This document shows positions 7,934-57,269 of a stretch of DNA of 64,000 nt, one piece after another. Origin of the DNA: Octopus sinensis (lineage: Eukaryota). Each line of letters begins with the position of its first letter. The stretch's first letter is position 1. The DNA lies in assembly GCF_006345805.1 (NCBI RefSeq), contig NC_043000.1, forward strand, positions 119,040,001 through 119,104,000. The letters are read 5' to 3'. A model generated the notes under the pieces. It saw only the letters and a program-made list of their open reading frames with translations. It searched no databases and was not told where the DNA came from. A program made the position numbers and the translations under genes.

Positions 7934-8464
7934 ACATTTTGAAGCTTAATAAAAGCACAAAATAAGAAATAATGAAAAGACAAATTTTATTTTCCTAATG
8001 TACATATAATGCCATTTTATTTCATTAAGTTTTAAAAATTAATCCAGCTATATGCTTCCCATCATTGTCAACACACTGTTGGAGACGTTCATGAAAATTA
8101 TCGATAACTCTAGGGATCATTTCTTCTGGAATAGTTGATAATTCTACACAAAATGCACATTTTCATTCATCAATAGATTGAGGGCGATGACTGAATAATT
8201 TTGATTTTAAATATCCCCACAAGAAGAAATCGCATTTCACCATTCCAGAAGAAATGATCCATAGAGTTATCGATAACTTTCATGAACGTCTCCAACAGTG
8301 TGTTGACAATGATGGGAAGCATTTAGCTGATTTAAATTTTAAAACATAATGAAATAAAATGGCATTATATGTACATTCGGAAAATACAATTTTTCTTTTC
8401 AGTATTTCTAATTTTGTGCTTTTATTAAGCTTCCAAATGTGTCAGATCATTTTGGCCCACCCTG
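7934..8464 (+). mobile_element. Tc1/mariner (maT/DD37D-like) 3' end folded back into a hairpin
   Basis: 8270-8350 encodes EMIHRVIDNFHERLQQCVDNDGKHLADLNFKT*, typical of a transposase C-terminus. The TIR ends ...GGCCCACCCTG followed by TA. 7934-~8130 is the inverted copy of ~8245-8440. Confidence 0.7.
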
Positions 8465-9517
8465 TATATGTATACATATATATATGTAAGTATGTTTATA
8501 TATATGTATGCTTATATATATGTATGTATATATACTTATATATATGTATGTTTATATATATGTATGTATATATATATATATATATGTATATATATATGTA
8601 TATATATGTTATATATATATATATATATATATATATATATATATGTATATATATATATGTATGTATATATTTACATGTATGTATATATGTATATATATGT
8701 GTGTATGTCTGTATATATATATATATATATATATATATATATATATATATATATATATATATATATATATATATATATATATACATGTATGTGTGTATGT
8801 ATATATATATATATATATATATATATATGTGTGTATGTCTGTATATATATATATTTATGTATGTATTATGTATATATGAATGTATATATGTATATATGTA
8901 TGGTGAAAGTAACTAACTGTACTGAAGCTTGTGGTGGTGGTGGTGGTGGTGGTGGTGGTGGTAGTAGTAGTTGTAGTAGTAGTAGTAGTAGTAGTAGTAG
9001 TAGTAGTAGTAGCTAGCAAATGTACTGGAACTGGCAATAGCAACTACACTAATAGTAGTCGTGATATGGGTTTCGACAGCCTTGAATTTAGCAACGTCAA
9101 GTAGCTTCTATAAGCCACTGGTTTGACAAATACCACTTGGAAGTTGAGATGGTCAGTAGAACCTAACTACTAGCAGGTCATATGGTCCCCAGTTGAAAAA
9201 TACTGATTTATGTGTATGTATATATGTAAAGGGCTAATATTGGTAAAATGAGACATAATTATCGACATGGCCGAAACAGCTGTAAGATCTAATTTATACT
9301 TATATTTATATTTACTCTTATTTATAATCTTTTTTATATATATTCTAATTATTATACAACATTACTCTTTTATGTACACTTTTTTATGTACATTCCTTTA
9401 TGTACACTCATTTGTCCTGCTTTTTATATTTAACCCTACAGTCTCTTATGTGGTGGTCTAATAAAGTATGTGATTGAGTATTATCTGGTAATTGATATTT
9501 GATTTAGATGTATTTCT

Positions 9518-9868
9518 CACCTTTTATCAATTCAAAATGAACAATTAAATTACACCATCTAGAAAATTACATACAATAGAAATATTAAAATTAAAATAGC
9601 AATAAAATGTCAATGAGTAAGTAAATTGCAAAACATAATAATAATTATTTATTATTTTATTATTATTTTTATTATTATTATTATTAATATTATTAATATT
9701 ATCATTATTATTATTATTATTATTATTATTATTATTATTATTATTATTATTATTTTGCAATTTACTTAATCATTGACATTTTATTGTTATTTTAATTTTA
9801 ATATTTCTATTATATGTAATTTTCTAGATGGTGTAATTTAATTGTTCATTTTGAATTGATAAAAGGTG
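9518..9868. repeat. AT-rich hairpin with ~120-bp inverted arms around a (TTA)n centre
   Basis: cacCTTTTATCAATTCAAAATGAACAATT... at 9518 is the reverse complement of ...AATTGTTCATTTTGAATTGATAAAAGgtg ending at 9868. Confidence 0.85.
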
Positions 9869-10315
9869 GGTTTTTTCTAATTTTTTATATATATATTATA
9901 TTGTGCGAAATTTGATTTGGTATTTCTGAATTGAATTTTTTTCCTTGTAAGTTTGGATTTTATTCCCTCAAATAATAATTATATATATATATATATAAAT
10001 TTCGTCTTTGGATTAGGTATGCACACACACACTGACCCACACATTTGCGCACAAACAAACAAAAAGAACGTAGCTCAGATAAAGGACAGAGTCAACGACT
10101 ATTGAAAAGGTTACATGATGCAGAGAAAATTTTAGGAAATGACTAAATGAATGGGAGCTTTACCTGCGAGTGTGTTAAATAACAAAGCACTTAAAAGAAA
10201 TGACACTCCTCAGACACAACAATGTGTGTGTGTGTGTGTGTGTGTGTATGTATGCAAATATATGTATGTTTATATAACATGTATATATGTATGTATATGT
10301 ATGTATGTATATATA

Positions 10316-10726
10316 CGCAGGAGTGGCTGTGTGGTAGGTAGCTTGCTTACCAACCACATGGTTCCGGGTTTAGTCCCACTGCGTGGCACATTGGGCAAGT
10401 GTCTTCTACTATAGCCTTGGGCCGACCATTTCCTTGTGAGCGGATTTGGTAGACGGAAACTGAAAGAAACCCGTCGTATATATAGATATACATATATGTG
10501 TGTGTGTGCCTGTATGTTTGGGTGTCTGTGTTTGTCCCCCTAGCATTGCTTGACAACTGATGCTGGTGTGTTTATGTCCCTGTCACTTAGCGGTTCGGCA
10601 AAAGAGACCGATAGAATAAGTACTGGGCTTACAAAGAATAAGTCCCGGGGTCAAGTTGCTCGATTAAAGGCAGTGCTCCAGCATGGCCGCAGTCAAATGA
10701 CTGAAACAAGTAAAAGAGTAAAAGAG
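10316..10726 (+). mobile_element. tRNA-derived SINE family A (CORE-like segment, internal microsatellite, LINE-like tail)
   Basis: A/B-box-like head (TGGCTGTGTGG...GGTTTAGTCCC), TTGGGCAAGTG segment, tail CAGTGCTCCAGCATGGCCGCAGTC...(TAAAAGAG)n. Several copies occur in the window. Confidence 0.88.
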
Positions 10727-54460: not shown

Positions 54461-54747
54461 TGTATGTAATTTTCTAGATGGTGTAATTTAATTGTTCCTT
54501 TTGAATTGATAAAAGGTGGGTTTTTTCCTAATTATATGTATATATATATATATATATATATATATATATATATATATATATATATATAAATATATAAATA
54601 TACATATATATATATACATATATATATATATATATATATATATATATATATATACACGTATATATATATATATATACATATATACATATATATATATATA
54701 TATATATATATATATATATATATATATATATATATATATATATATAT

Positions 54748-55034
54748 AAACAATTGCAGCGTGGAAGGTGTTTATAAGCCATTTAAGAAACACACAAAAG
54801 CCGTTCGATTCACTCCAACATTTAAGTTTAAGTTGTCAAAATATTTTCGTCGCTAAAATCCGCGACCTGTTCACTGACAAAGTCCGTGATGCAGCACGGA
54901 CTTTGTCAGTGAACAGGTCGCGGCTTTAGCGACGAAAATATTTTGACAAATTAAACTTAAATGTTGGAGTGAATCGAACGGCTTTTGTGTGTTTCTTAAA
55001 TGGCTTATAAACACCTTCCACGCTGCAATTGTTT
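54748..55034. mobile_element. ~285-bp fold-back palindrome (PLE-type terminus) with G3-C8 hammerhead-like motifs on both strands
   Basis: Arms invert around ATGCAG (54889-54894); related subfamily to 19518-19796. Confidence 0.75.
54902..54950 (+). ncRNA. Minimal hammerhead-like motif, G3-C8 variant; inverse copy at 54833-54881 (-)
   Basis: UUUGUCA (stem I) GUGAACA-G GUCGC-ggcuuua-GCGAC GAAAA-UA-UUU UGACAAA: 7-bp stem I, 5-bp stem II, palindromic AAAUAUUU stem III. Confidence 0.6.
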
Positions 55035-55907
55035 TCGTTTCAGCACACGATCTCAGATCAAATTACTTGCTATGCGAGTACATCTCCGTAATATATATAT
55101 ATATGTGTATATATATATATATATATATATATATATACATAGGTCTCCCCAAGGAAATGACTAGAGACCGAGACCTATGGAAGTATGCTGTGCGTGAGAA
55201 GACCCGGCGGGACAAGTGAGACCATAACCCATGGCCTCTACCTGGGATGTAGCCAGTCGACATATGCATACCTTTCCTTCTTGGGACACAAATCTACACT
55301 TGTGAAGACCTGTTGAGGCAAGTGGAAATCAGAACCAAACTCGAAGTCGATCAACATCAATGGAAATTGCTAGCATGGAAAGCGGACGCTAAATGATGAT
55401 GATGATGATGATATATACAAACACACACATAAATCAGTATTTTTCAACTGGGGACCATATGACCTGCTAGTAGTTAGGTTCTATTGACCATCTCAACTTC
55501 CAAGTGGGATTTGTCAAACCAGTGGCTTATAGAAGCTACTTGACGTCGCTGAATTCAAGGCTGTCGAAACCCATATCACGACTACTATTAGTGTAGTTGC
55601 TATTGCCAGTTCCAGTACATTTGCTAGCTACTACTACTACTACTACTACTACTACTACTACTACTACTACTACTACTACTACTAATACTACTACTACCAC
55701 AACCACCACCACCACCAGCTTCAGTACAGTTAGTTACTTTCACCATACATATATACATATATACATACATTCATACATACACACACATGTATATATGTAT
55801 ATACATATATATATACATATACTCATACATGTATATATATATACATACACACACACACACACACACACAACACACACACACACACACATATATATATATA
55901 TATATAT

Positions 55908-56527
55908 TCTTTTATTCTTTTACATGTTTCAGTCATTTGACTACGACCATGCTGGAGCACCGACTTTAATCGAGCAACTCGACCCCGGGACTTATTCTTT
56001 GTAAGCCCAGTACTTATTCTATCAGTCTCTTTTGCCGAACCGCTAAGTAACGGGGACATAAACACACCAGCATCGGTTGTCAAGCAATGCTAGGAGGACA
56101 AACACAGACACAAACACACACACACACGCATATATATATATACATATATACGACGGGCTTCTTTCAGTTTCCGTCTACCAAATCCACTCACAAGGCATTG
56201 GTCGGCCCGGGGCTATAGTAGAAGACACTTGCCCAAGGTGCCACGCAGTGGGACTGAACCCGGAACCATGTGGTTGGTAAACAAGCTACGTACCACACAG
56301 CCAAAAGGCGGCGAGCTGGCAGAAACGTTAGCACGCTGGGCGAAATGCGTAGCTGTATTTCGTCTGCCGTTACGTTCTGAGTTCAAATTCCGCCGAGGTC
56401 GACTTTGCCTTTCATCCTTTCGGGGTCGATAAATTAAGTACCAGTTACGCACTGGGGTCGACGTAATCCGTTTGTCTGTCCTTATTTGTCCCCTCTGTGT
56501 GTAGCCCCTTGTGAGTAGTAAAGAAAT
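55908..56527. mobile_element. Head-to-head SINE pair: family A (55908-56302, -) and family B (56307-56527, +), right arm only
   Basis: Both match the other copies; absent at the mirrored left position. Confidence 0.85.
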
Positions 56528-57269
56528 ATCTATATTTATATATACATATATATATATATACATATATATAAACATACTTAAAAGCACAAAATAAGAAATA
56601 ATGAAACGAAAAATTGTATTTTCCGAATGTACATATAATGCCATTTTATTTCATTATGTTTTAAAAATTAAATCAGCTAAATGCTTCCCATCATTGTCAA
56701 CACACTGTTGGAGACGTTCATGAAAGTTATCGATAACTCTATGGATCATTTCTTCTGGAATTGTGAAATGCGATTTCTTCTTTTTGGGATATTTAAAATC
56801 AAAAGTATTCAGTCATCGCCCTCAATTTATTGATGAATGAAAATGTGCAATATATATACACACATACATACATACATATATATACACGCATACATACATA
56901 TATATATAGGAATAGCCAGAATGTTATTCTTTAAAATATCTAAAGGTACGGGTGGCACAGTGTATACAAGATGCTCCTAGATCAAAACGGTTGTTCAATA
57001 AGTTTATATTATCCCTATATTTCAAAATTTGTTATATCTCCATAGAATAAAGTTCACATCCATCTCTACTATTCTTATAAGGCTGCACCTGTCTTATTAT
57101 ATACCATTTAAGCCTAAATCCGATATTTTTTCTTTCAACTCCCAAATTTTACTAGACAGCGTTATGCAACCTGCTTTATGTTTAAGTCTAAAGCTAGACA
57201 GATGGTTGTTTATACGTTTCTTCAGGTCTATAGAACATCGAAAATAAAATAGCTATTATTTGAAGTCAT

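Follow-up and report, generated by a model that had tools for sequence, protein, structure and literature searches.

We analysed 64 kb of the Octopus sinensis genome (GCA_006345805.1, CM016862.1:119040001-119104000; hereafter the window) and found a palindrome in which two inverted arms, each carrying an intact chitin deacetylase (CDA) gene, flank a unique spacer. The palindrome is probably an old inverted segmental duplication at the end of a CDA gene cluster, in which the gene of the right arm (the right gene) had its catalytic exon swapped for one from a paralogue of another type, the B type. The gene of the left arm (the left gene) carries an A-type catalytic exon. What the data show directly is the structure and its occurrence in two species, the relative age and order of the events, where the exons came from and the intact catalytic motifs. 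An earlier note on this DNA had described the anatomy accurately; its interpretation, that the duplication was recent and that it sheltered two genes diverging in place, was for the most part not borne out.

Rather than standing alone, the palindrome is one end of a tandem-plus-inverted cluster. By searching all loci with exon peptides (tblastn) and adding the locus coordinates, we counted at least six units, which lie in both orientations and span 119.04-119.20 Mb of CM016862.1 in O. sinensis. The order of units is the same in O. sinensis and Octopus vulgaris: two C-type units, a B-type unit, unit 3, the right arm, the spacer and the left arm. The B-type unit corresponds to O. sinensis P0003, with the O. 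vulgaris copy P0123 placed by accession order only, and unit 3 corresponds to O. vulgaris P0004.

Origin of the catalytic exon of the right gene

Both genes have two exons, and the second exon holds the entire CE4 catalytic domain. At the nucleotide level, the CE4 exon of the right gene was 97.6% identical to that of the B-type unit (L004), which lies about 65 kb away, and 81.9% identical to that of the left gene. The CE4 exon of the left gene was 98.9% identical to its O. vulgaris orthologue. The foreign sequence extends beyond the exon: positions 44976-48077 of the right arm, about 3.1 kb that are unlike the left arm in a global alignment, matched the B unit (L004 42298-45385) with 96.4% identity. 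Between 44800 and 45600, the right arm, unit 3, the left arm and the B unit were all 97-100% identical where aligned. From about 45600 to 1.2 kb past the exon, the right arm was 94-100% identical to the B unit and 66-93% identical to the A-type units. The left limit of this B-type tract is indistinct, with A and B introns 97-100% identical from 44976 to 45600; at its right junction (48072-48077), the flanking matches overlap by 6 bp.

Beyond the right junction, the 3′ end of an A-type intron occurs a second time and leads into a relic of the A-type CE4 exon (48719-48750, + strand). This relic is 32 nucleotides long, has an intact acceptor, is in frame and reads G-PCQPEHCKC-stop. It consists of the first 24 and the last few bases of the A-type exon, from which 915 bp were removed in frame. 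As the right arm holds both a B-like exon and an A-type relic, the right gene gained a foreign catalytic exon and lost its own. We note separately that the relic, if spliced to exon 1, would give a CBM14-only protein ending in PCQPEHCKC.

The relationships among the units give the direction of this change. An intron stretch of about 750 bp was retained in the left arm, the B unit and the Octopus bimaculoides gene and was lost from the right arm and unit 3. Because the two losses share the same end points, the right arm and unit 3 are sisters, and the inverted duplication would have come first, followed by a tandem copy of the right arm. We considered an ancestral gene with two alternative catalytic exons that were reciprocally lost, and rejected it: unit 3 and the left arm are A-type only, and the right arm and unit 3 are sisters through the shared deletion, so the B tract is a gain in the right arm.

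A second, smaller difference between the genes lies in exon 1. Here the left gene carries a divergent patch in the core of its first CBM14 domain (CBM14-1), on both sides of which the arms are 98% identical. Within the patch, identities of the right gene to unit 3 and the C units reached 98-100%, which leaves the left lineage of both species as the divergent one. By direct count, exon 1 of the left gene and that of its O. vulgaris orthologue had four differences. No donor of the patch was found among the loci compared.

Comparison with Octopus vulgaris

We compared the window with the O. vulgaris reference (GCA_951406725.2), an independent assembly from Oxford Nanopore Technologies (ONT), 10x and Omni-C data, in which the locus lies on OX597817.1. 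The comparison covered the loci L001 (48.278-48.305 Mb) and L002 (48.223-48.249 Mb), which lie on either side of an interval of about 29 kb (about 48.249-48.278 Mb). L001 was 97-99% identical to the left arm and starts with the 69-bp tandem array that is also found in the spacer of the window. L002 matched window positions 51839-60090 with 97.5-98.2% identity (97.5-98.3% with the start of unit 3 included), which covers the outer right arm, including an insertion of 907 bp that is private to this arm, and the right flank; window positions 51839-56849 correspond to L002 1-5020 (98%), and the match continues into the same right flank. Within the start of unit 3, L002 also matched 62772-64000, and from there it ran on through a complete third unit, which encodes P0004. 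L001 is in forward and L002 in reversed orientation on one O. vulgaris chromosome, the same inverted layout as in O. sinensis.

In a test of four sequences over 1.48 kb, 26 sites united the orthologous arms, 0 sites united arms of the same species and 1 site showed the third pattern (a slice of unit 3 in this alignment, at 80% identity, was used solely for the count of informative sites). Identities over the same 1.48 kb were 99.25% between the left arms of O. sinensis (OsL) and O. vulgaris (OvL), 99.32% between the right arms (OsR and OvR) and 97.3-97.8% between left and right arms. Over 13,672 clean columns, a comparison of the three sequences OsL, OvL and OsR gave site counts of 79, 50 and 448: the right arm differed from both left-arm orthologues at 448 sites, and the orthologues differed from each other at 129. 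Divergence was 2.2-3.6% between arms and 0.7-0.9% between orthologues (3.6% versus 0.94% over 13.7 kb).

The 26:0:1 pattern and these divergences mean that the arms are paralogues that were distinct before the species split, and not alleles. They are about 3-4 times older than that split, and so the duplication is not recent, contrary to what had been proposed. The published age of the split between O. sinensis and O. vulgaris is about 2.5 million years, and by a simple clock we infer that the last common state of the arms dates to about 7-10 million years ago. We detected no arm-to-arm conversion after the species split (0 of 27 informative sites; 1.48 kb with four sequences), which leaves the idea that the palindrome shelters its genes through such conversion unsupported. 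More generally, a second species alone, without reads, was sufficient to show that a suspicious palindrome in a heterozygous mollusc assembly is real.

Structure of the palindrome

We mapped the arms using a repeat finder and self-BLAST of the window, with a global alignment for indels. The two inverted arms of about 20 kb and the spacer of about 8.5 kb described earlier were confirmed (20.4, 19.8 and 8.5 kb). The inverted matches (Table 1) are collinear from 8154/56849 inward to 28585/37088 and are far above chance level. The window contains 0 N bases, and therefore the arms and the spacer lie within one contig. The alignable part amounts to about 14.2 kb per arm, with an identity of about 95.5% counting gaps (arithmetic on the self-BLAST matches); substitutions between the arms were 3.6% overall and 2.2-2.6% in the best stretch (clean columns). 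The outermost 1.8 kb of the arms consist of microsatellite and transposable element (TE) debris that aligns at 72-89%; in the left arm the outer 1.5 kb are patchy, and high-identity collinear homology begins at about 9700. The description of the arms as near-identical thus holds locally but not overall: the single mismatch reported between 17881-18000 and 44341-44460 (120 bases) was exact on recount.

The discrete indels between the arms are also real. Three segments are present in the left arm only: 3347 bp at 22557-25903, 915 bp at 14867-15781, which is the CE4 exon of the left gene, and the intron stretch of about 750 bp. Present in the right arm only is a TE fragment of 907 bp encoding reverse transcriptase. 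The 3.35-kb segment also occurs at the start of unit 3, so its absence from the right arm is a deletion there and not an insertion in the left arm. An open reading frame (ORF) at 17146-17532, which overlaps the 750-bp intron stretch, had a weak match to an IS1595/Merlin-like transposase (E = 0.002), below the cut-off. We also considered an intron element of 750-900 bp as a conserved non-coding element and rejected this, given that B-type orthologues were about 91-92% identical in intron and exon alike; the figure of 77% for this element came from a comparison of paralogues.

The two chitin deacetylase genes

The claim of an intact gene in each arm, with two CBM14 domains and a CE4 domain and in divergent orientation, was upheld by ORFs, splice sites, Pfam matches and motifs. 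The left gene encodes a protein of 501 amino acids (aa) and the right gene one of 508 aa. Their 5′ ends point toward the spacer and transcription runs away from it. Both have GTAAGT donors, polypyrimidine-AG acceptors and a phase-1 intron. Exon 1 encodes a signal peptide and two six-cysteine CBM14 domains with a Ser/Thr/Pro-rich linker. The proteins are 71.7% identical, set in surrounding DNA that is 97-98% identical.

In Pfam searches, the right protein matched Polysacc_deac_1 with 35.7 bits (9e-9) and the left protein with 22.7 bits, just below the cut-off of 23.1. For CBM_14 (cut-off 22.1), the left protein scored 40.1 bits (4e-10) in two stretches and the right protein 24.7 bits (2.7e-5), with one stretch passing. 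Both CBM14 regions of both proteins contain at least six cysteines; the second CBM14 domain of the right protein is supported by its near-identity to the left counterpart and not by a profile match of its own. Over about 310 residues, Bombyx mori CDA8 (PDB 5Z34) was matched by the right protein at 1.6e-73 and by the left protein at 5.8e-61 (phmmer for the left protein), and the alignments run end to end with silkworm CDA8 5Z34 and CDA1 5ZNS (E 1e-59 to 1e-73). All five CE4 motifs were recovered, the aligned set being TFDD, HxxxxHxxxH, RSPF, YD(T/S)S and FLH. Motif 1, which in this family supplies the catalytic base and a metal-binding Asp, is LLTFDD in both proteins, aligned to TFDD of 5Z34; motif 2 (H(S/T)xxH, with two metal-binding His) is HTQTH in the left and HSKTH in the right protein, aligned to silkworm HSISH and HSITH. 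Motifs 3-5 (RxP(Y/F), an Asp-containing motif and LxH, which has the catalytic His) are RSPFL, YD(T/S)SM and GIFLH in both, assigned from the alignment to R(I/A)P(F/Y)L, YD(C/S)T and F(F/Y)(V/F)H. As far as sequence can tell, both proteins are members of the animal CE4/CBM14 chitin deacetylase family. Both genes are expected to code for secreted deacetylases that bind chitin and differ in their CBM14-1 and catalytic (A or B) modules.

The nearest protein relatives are Octopus proteins named “chitin deacetylase 7-like” in RefSeq. The locus of O. sinensis XP_029635419.2 (L005) equals window positions 30205-4860, with 100% identity over 25,346 bp. This model is the left gene with another first exon that skips the signal peptide, and it matches exon 1 of the left gene from residue 19 on (by eye). 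The part of exon 1 that encodes the signal peptide (18740-18835 on the − strand and 43491-43586 on the + strand) ends in ...TATTCTCAG. In the RefSeq and O. vulgaris annotations, exons further upstream (such as the ORF at 21277-21486) are spliced to that TATTCTCAG end as their acceptor; such models have no signal peptide, and the paralogue models P0002 and P0003 retain it. No annotated protein matching the right gene was found in the database, nor was the ORF of the right exon on record, and the right gene is therefore unannotated. These results call for an annotation correction, with the right gene entered as an intact chitin deacetylase and the signal peptide restored to the RefSeq and O. vulgaris models of the left gene, which omit it. 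Our search of the literature on octopus chitin deacetylases and these accessions found nothing relevant on this cluster or on exon replacement.

Further units of the cluster

The O. bimaculoides locus contains one B-type gene. A second CDA exon 1 lies on the minus strand (L006 41-295 and 1175-1327), 9 kb upstream of this gene, in a locus with 7354 Ns; given this exon on the opposite strand, divergent pairs may predate the O. vulgaris species complex. The two C-type units of O. vulgaris (L003 17192-22496 and 31775-36923) are about 14.5 kb apart and their CE4 exons are 99.5% identical. They were merged in the annotation into a 780-aa “isoform” with a duplicated domain (P0001). The pair has the appearance of a tandem duplication of very recent date, or else of an assembly region that was collapsed or expanded.

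Mode of evolution

Across the cluster, the introns of paralogues are 97-100% identical and the exon cores differ by 18-30%. The synonymous divergence (dS) between A-type and B-type exons was 0.22, which exceeds the 0.15 found when the B orthologue of O. sinensis is compared with that of O. bimaculoides, a species separated from it by about 34 million years. In these B orthologues, intron and exon alike were about 91-92% identical. As intron and exon are equally diverged between orthologues, the identity of introns between paralogues reflects homogenisation and not constraint.

We then considered the ratio of non-synonymous to synonymous divergence (dN/dS). It was 0.41 in the B lineage, which is under purifying selection, and 0.9-1.2 in comparisons with A-type copies; the right exon compared with the B exon gave 2.6, based on 22 differences only. 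When the left gene is compared with unit 3 over codons 36-140 of the catalytic exon, 1.3 synonymous stand against 27.7 non-synonymous changes (one-sided binomial P ~0.01). These ratios suggest diversifying selection on the exon cores, in a cluster with periodic homogenisation of its non-coding parts; relaxed constraint on some copies is a live alternative. The most unusual aspect of the cluster is this pairing of near-identical introns with strongly diverged exon cores that may have been positively selected.

Proposed sequence of events

We infer the following history, in which the molecular mechanisms, as well as selection, expression and enzymatic function, are our interpretation. Before the lineages of O. 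sinensis and O. vulgaris separated, a unit of about 20 kb with one two-exon gene gave rise to an inverted copy, and the right copy was later duplicated in tandem, which produced unit 3. The arms were altered further as TEs inserted and sequence was deleted. In the right arm, about 2.5-3.1 kb of a B-type paralogue was presumably copied into the intron, with one end in the intron sequence shared by all units and the other at the junction with the 6-bp overlap. In this way the B-type exon landed upstream of the original A-type exon, which was then lost through the in-frame deletion of 915 bp. The left gene retained its A-type exon; its CBM14-1 core is divergent. Gene conversion or unequal exchange presumably homogenised the non-coding sequence of the cluster, while the exon cores stayed or became very different. 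The outcome is two intact, presumably secreted enzymes with different chitin-binding and catalytic modules. Nothing in the data points to a function for the palindromic arrangement itself.

Several observations weigh against this reading. In O. vulgaris, exon 1 of the left-gene orthologue is interrupted by a nonsense codon (CAG to TAG; Q172*, L001 ~13072). This change, which may be a genuine pseudogenising mutation or a mistake in the assembly, accounts for the O. vulgaris gene models that begin further downstream or draw on exons upstream. This codon and the dN/dS of about 1 also fit relaxed constraint. No annotated protein corresponds to the right gene, which leaves its expression putative. 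In the three-sequence counts, there was a modest excess of sites at which OsL equals OsR (79 versus 50), which fits slight conversion after the species diverged or a higher error rate of the ONT assembly. It is O. sinensis alone that confirms the B-type exon and the relic: the comparison with O. vulgaris covered L001 and L002, and the right gene and most of the spacer are expected between them. The O. vulgaris interval in which the spacer and the right arm are expected exceeds its counterpart in the window by about 9 kb. Support for the structure is at the level of assemblies and not of reads.

Alternative explanations

The alternative that survives best is decay, which we consider possible but improbable. 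Under this explanation, the left gene and unit 3, which are the A-type copies, and perhaps also the right gene would be redundant young duplicates under relaxed constraint on the way to becoming pseudogenes, and the differences between the proteins would have no function. It would account for a dN/dS of about 1 in most pairs, the Q172* codon, the unannotated status of the right gene and the CE4 score of the left protein below the Pfam cut-off (22.7 versus 23.1 bits). However, the left gene, the right gene and unit 3 have all retained their frames, splice sites, cysteine patterns and catalytic motifs despite nucleotide divergence of 7-18%. The excess of non-synonymous changes that separates the left gene from unit 3 in codons 36-140 speaks for positive selection and against drift, and the B lineage has remained under purifying selection over about 34 million years.

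It is less likely again that this is an active palindrome of the sex-chromosome type, in which ongoing conversion between arms shelters the genes and selection keeps the exon cores apart. Homogenisation of non-coding sequence did occur at some time: non-coding sequence was far more alike than exon cores in every comparison of units, and the dS of the exon between the left gene and unit 3 was 0.069, versus about 0.02-0.03 for the intron. The slight excess of OsL=OsR sites also speaks for this explanation. This homogenisation is not specific to the arms, however, as the B unit about 65 kb away has the same 97-100% identical intron. The arms are about 96-98% identical and not >99.9%, none of the 27 informative sites supports concerted evolution since the split, the right arm is about equally far from the O. 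vulgaris left arm and from the left arm of its own species, and structural differences at the kilobase scale have been accumulating between the arms.

An assembly artefact, with two haplotypes of one locus joined head-to-head, is very improbable. In its favour, octopus genomes are rich in repeats and heterozygous (1.22% in O. vulgaris), older long-read data underlie the assembly of O. sinensis, and divergence of a few percent with indels superficially resembles divergence between haplotypes. The earlier note had named such mis-joined alleles as the case that would overturn it; the finding of a separate orthologue of each arm in the independent O. vulgaris assembly, with the 26:0:1 pattern, contradicts this. 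The arms are 3-4 times more diverged than orthologues and 2-3 times more than the heterozygosity of 1.22%. They also have different flanks and different types of catalytic exon, and they sit with their unique 8.5-kb spacer in one gap-free contig.

Finally, the earlier note had a recent inverted duplication followed by divergence of the two genes in place. This version is hardly credible: flanks and introns are locally near-identical and the proteins clearly differ (72% identity, dN/dS of about 1 or above), but the right catalytic exon is of an older, other type (97.6% identical to another paralogue versus 81.9% to the left exon), the relic of the original exon is still there, the dS of 0.21 between left and right exons is about ten times the divergence of the arms, the odd CBM14-1 core of the left gene is a sharply bounded patch within 98% identical sequence, and the duplication is older than the species split.

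Spacer and other elements of the window

Within the spacer lie Helitron fragments, a SINE (short interspersed nuclear element)-like element and a 69-bp tandem array, and CA-rich microsatellites occur where it borders each arm. The same 69-bp array adjoins the left arm in O. vulgaris, and the spacer edge beside the left arm, the sole edge visible in that species, has an identical orientation in both; the spacer inversion raised in the earlier note gained no support there. In O. vulgaris the array is longer (L001 1-3043) and contains an open ORF of 623 aa made of 23-aa repeats, ARAAENDAQRELRLSRNAASTAF; it is annotated within a gene model of 1875 aa. The O. sinensis array has 17-42 stops in each of its three frames. 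A protein search with the 23-aa-repeat ORF gave no scoring match. The nearest relatives of the Helitron ORFs in the spacer are Helitron proteins with at most 48% identity, which indicates an old or rare family. We saw no helicase part of a Helitron in the window.

Long, imperfect, TA/CA-rich microsatellite-like arrays occur at 1-975, 2369-3131, 7076-7341, 8463-8905, 47094-47660 and 54533-54752. They cross-match on both strands, produce thousands of BLAST matches and blur the outer limits of the arms. TE remnants were found at 952-2106, 4078-4752, 23088-23426, 53630-54487, 61771-62727 and 63587-63925. These comprise a reverse transcriptase (RVT_1), a GIY-YIG domain (read as a Penelope-like element) and Tc1-like helix-turn-helix fragments. 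One of these ORFs, without a Pfam match of its own, lies in a stretch about 76% similar to the reverse-transcriptase element at 952-2106, and a 319-aa Asn-rich ORF among these coordinates had no family match. No RNA families were found in an Rfam scan of the whole window.

Table 1. Coordinates of the palindrome, its genes and associated elements in the window (TRF, Tandem Repeats Finder)
Feature	Position	Strand	Size	Description and basis
Left arm	8154..28585		20.4 kb	Self-BLAST chain; 99% identity to O. vulgaris L001
Spacer, unique	28586..37087		8.5 kb	Self-BLAST
Right arm	37088..56849		19.8 kb	Self-BLAST chain
Inverted match	8154-8424 / 56849-56579			96.7%; self-BLAST
Inverted match	8739-9228 / 55907-55412			89%; self-BLAST
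Inverted match	9980-13988 / 53302-49311		4 kb	97.3%, E = 0; self-BLAST
Inverted match	14401-14873 / 49209-48737			97.7%; self-BLAST
Inverted match	15782-16458 / 48743-48072			96.2%; self-BLAST
Inverted match	17360-19211 / 44980-43106			93.7%; self-BLAST
Inverted match	19189-22558 / 43250-39878			95.9%; self-BLAST
Inverted match	25904-27949 / 39879-37786			94.4%; self-BLAST
Inverted match	27946-28585 / 37741-37088			92.8%; self-BLAST
Left gene, exon 1	18277..18835	-		Signal peptide, CBM14-1, linker, CBM14-2; ORF and GT donor
Left gene, exon 2	14860..15806	-		A-type CE4 catalytic exon including stop; AG acceptor
Right gene, exon 1	43491..44064	+		Signal peptide, CBM14-1, linker, CBM14-2; ORF and GT donor
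Right gene, exon 2	45935..46887	+		B-type CE4 catalytic exon including stop; AG acceptor
B-type tract in right arm	45600..48077	+		Intron end, CE4-B exon, 1.2 kb of 3′ flank; 100-bp sliding windows
Second A-type intron 3′ end and relic	48072..48750	+		96.2% to left arm 16458-15782; junction read directly
Divergent CBM14-1 core patch of left gene	18547..18718	-	~170 bp	61-85% to right gene, dN/dS 2.2; 60-bp sliding windows
Ancestral intron stretch	16608..17353		~750 bp	Kept in left gene; identical deletion end points in right arm and O. vulgaris unit 3
3.35-kb segment	22557..25903		3.35 kb	In left arm and unit 3 start, deleted in right arm; holds Tc1-like fragments
Unit 3 start	59575..64000		4.4 kb	Direct orientation to right arm; runs off window; inverted matches to left arm 24909-25409 and 23013-24253
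69-bp × 26 tandem array	29620..31429	+		TRF score 3018
Helitron Rep remnant	31620..33775	+		Frameshifted across several frames; Helitron_like_N 1.5e-29

Comparison with known systems

Among animal CE4 deacetylases with CBM14 domains, such as B. mori CDA8 (5Z34) and CDA1 (5ZNS/5ZNT), the two octopus proteins share the NodB/CE4 domain and its five motifs, as well as an N-terminal signal peptide followed by cysteine-rich CBM14. They differ from these relatives in having two CBM14 domains, with no other Pfam domain such as LDLa found, and a catalytic domain encoded in one exon. They are also part of a cluster specific to a molluscan lineage, in which both modules vary between paralogues.

The palindromes of primate sex chromosomes (P1-P8 type) have arms that are >99.9% identical and are maintained by arm-to-arm gene conversion. 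The octopus palindrome resembles them in its long inverted arms, unique spacer and gene copy in each arm. It differs in its identity of about 96-98%, in having no signal of conversion after the split, in its kilobase-scale indels and in its position within a tandem cluster; the identity between its arms is not above that between orthologues, and concerted evolution within species was not found in the 1.48 kb with four sequences, the three-sequence counts over 13.7 kb (79 versus 50) being weakly ambiguous. The closer parallel is with birth-and-death gene clusters. Like these, the octopus cluster has units in two orientations, a conserved order, mosaic units and non-allelic exchange of exon segments, and we saw no difference in kind. 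We would class the structure as an inverted segmental duplication within a birth-and-death cluster in which paralogues have exchanged an exon, and it reveals no new kind of genome structure or mechanism. What it adds is that octopus CDA paralogues exchange whole catalytic exons and that their exon cores evolve unusually fast. This offers a lead for cephalopod chitin biology (beak, radula, sucker lining, gut cuticle and digestion of prey cuticle) and for new CE4 deacetylation patterns.

The conotoxin genes of cone snails combine a conserved signal sequence and introns with a hypervariable exon for the mature peptide. In the octopus genes, the signal peptide and introns are likewise 97-100% identical, the exon cores are 18-40% different and dN/dS is at least 1. 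Unlike conotoxins, the octopus genes encode enzymes of about 500 residues and are few in number, and we draw the parallel as an analogy only, without a link to venom or saliva. By this analogy, and tentatively, as we think it rather unlikely, the cluster might work as a module-shuffling system, in which introns and flanks kept 97-100% identical between paralogues, those of the palindrome arms included, serve as recombination substrates that move whole CBM14 or CE4 exon cassettes between genes, as happened in the right arm, with positive selection keeping the cores different. If true, this would be conotoxin-like evolution in the chitin-modifying enzymes of a crustacean predator, whose targets could be the cuticle of its prey, chitinous pathogens or its own chitin.

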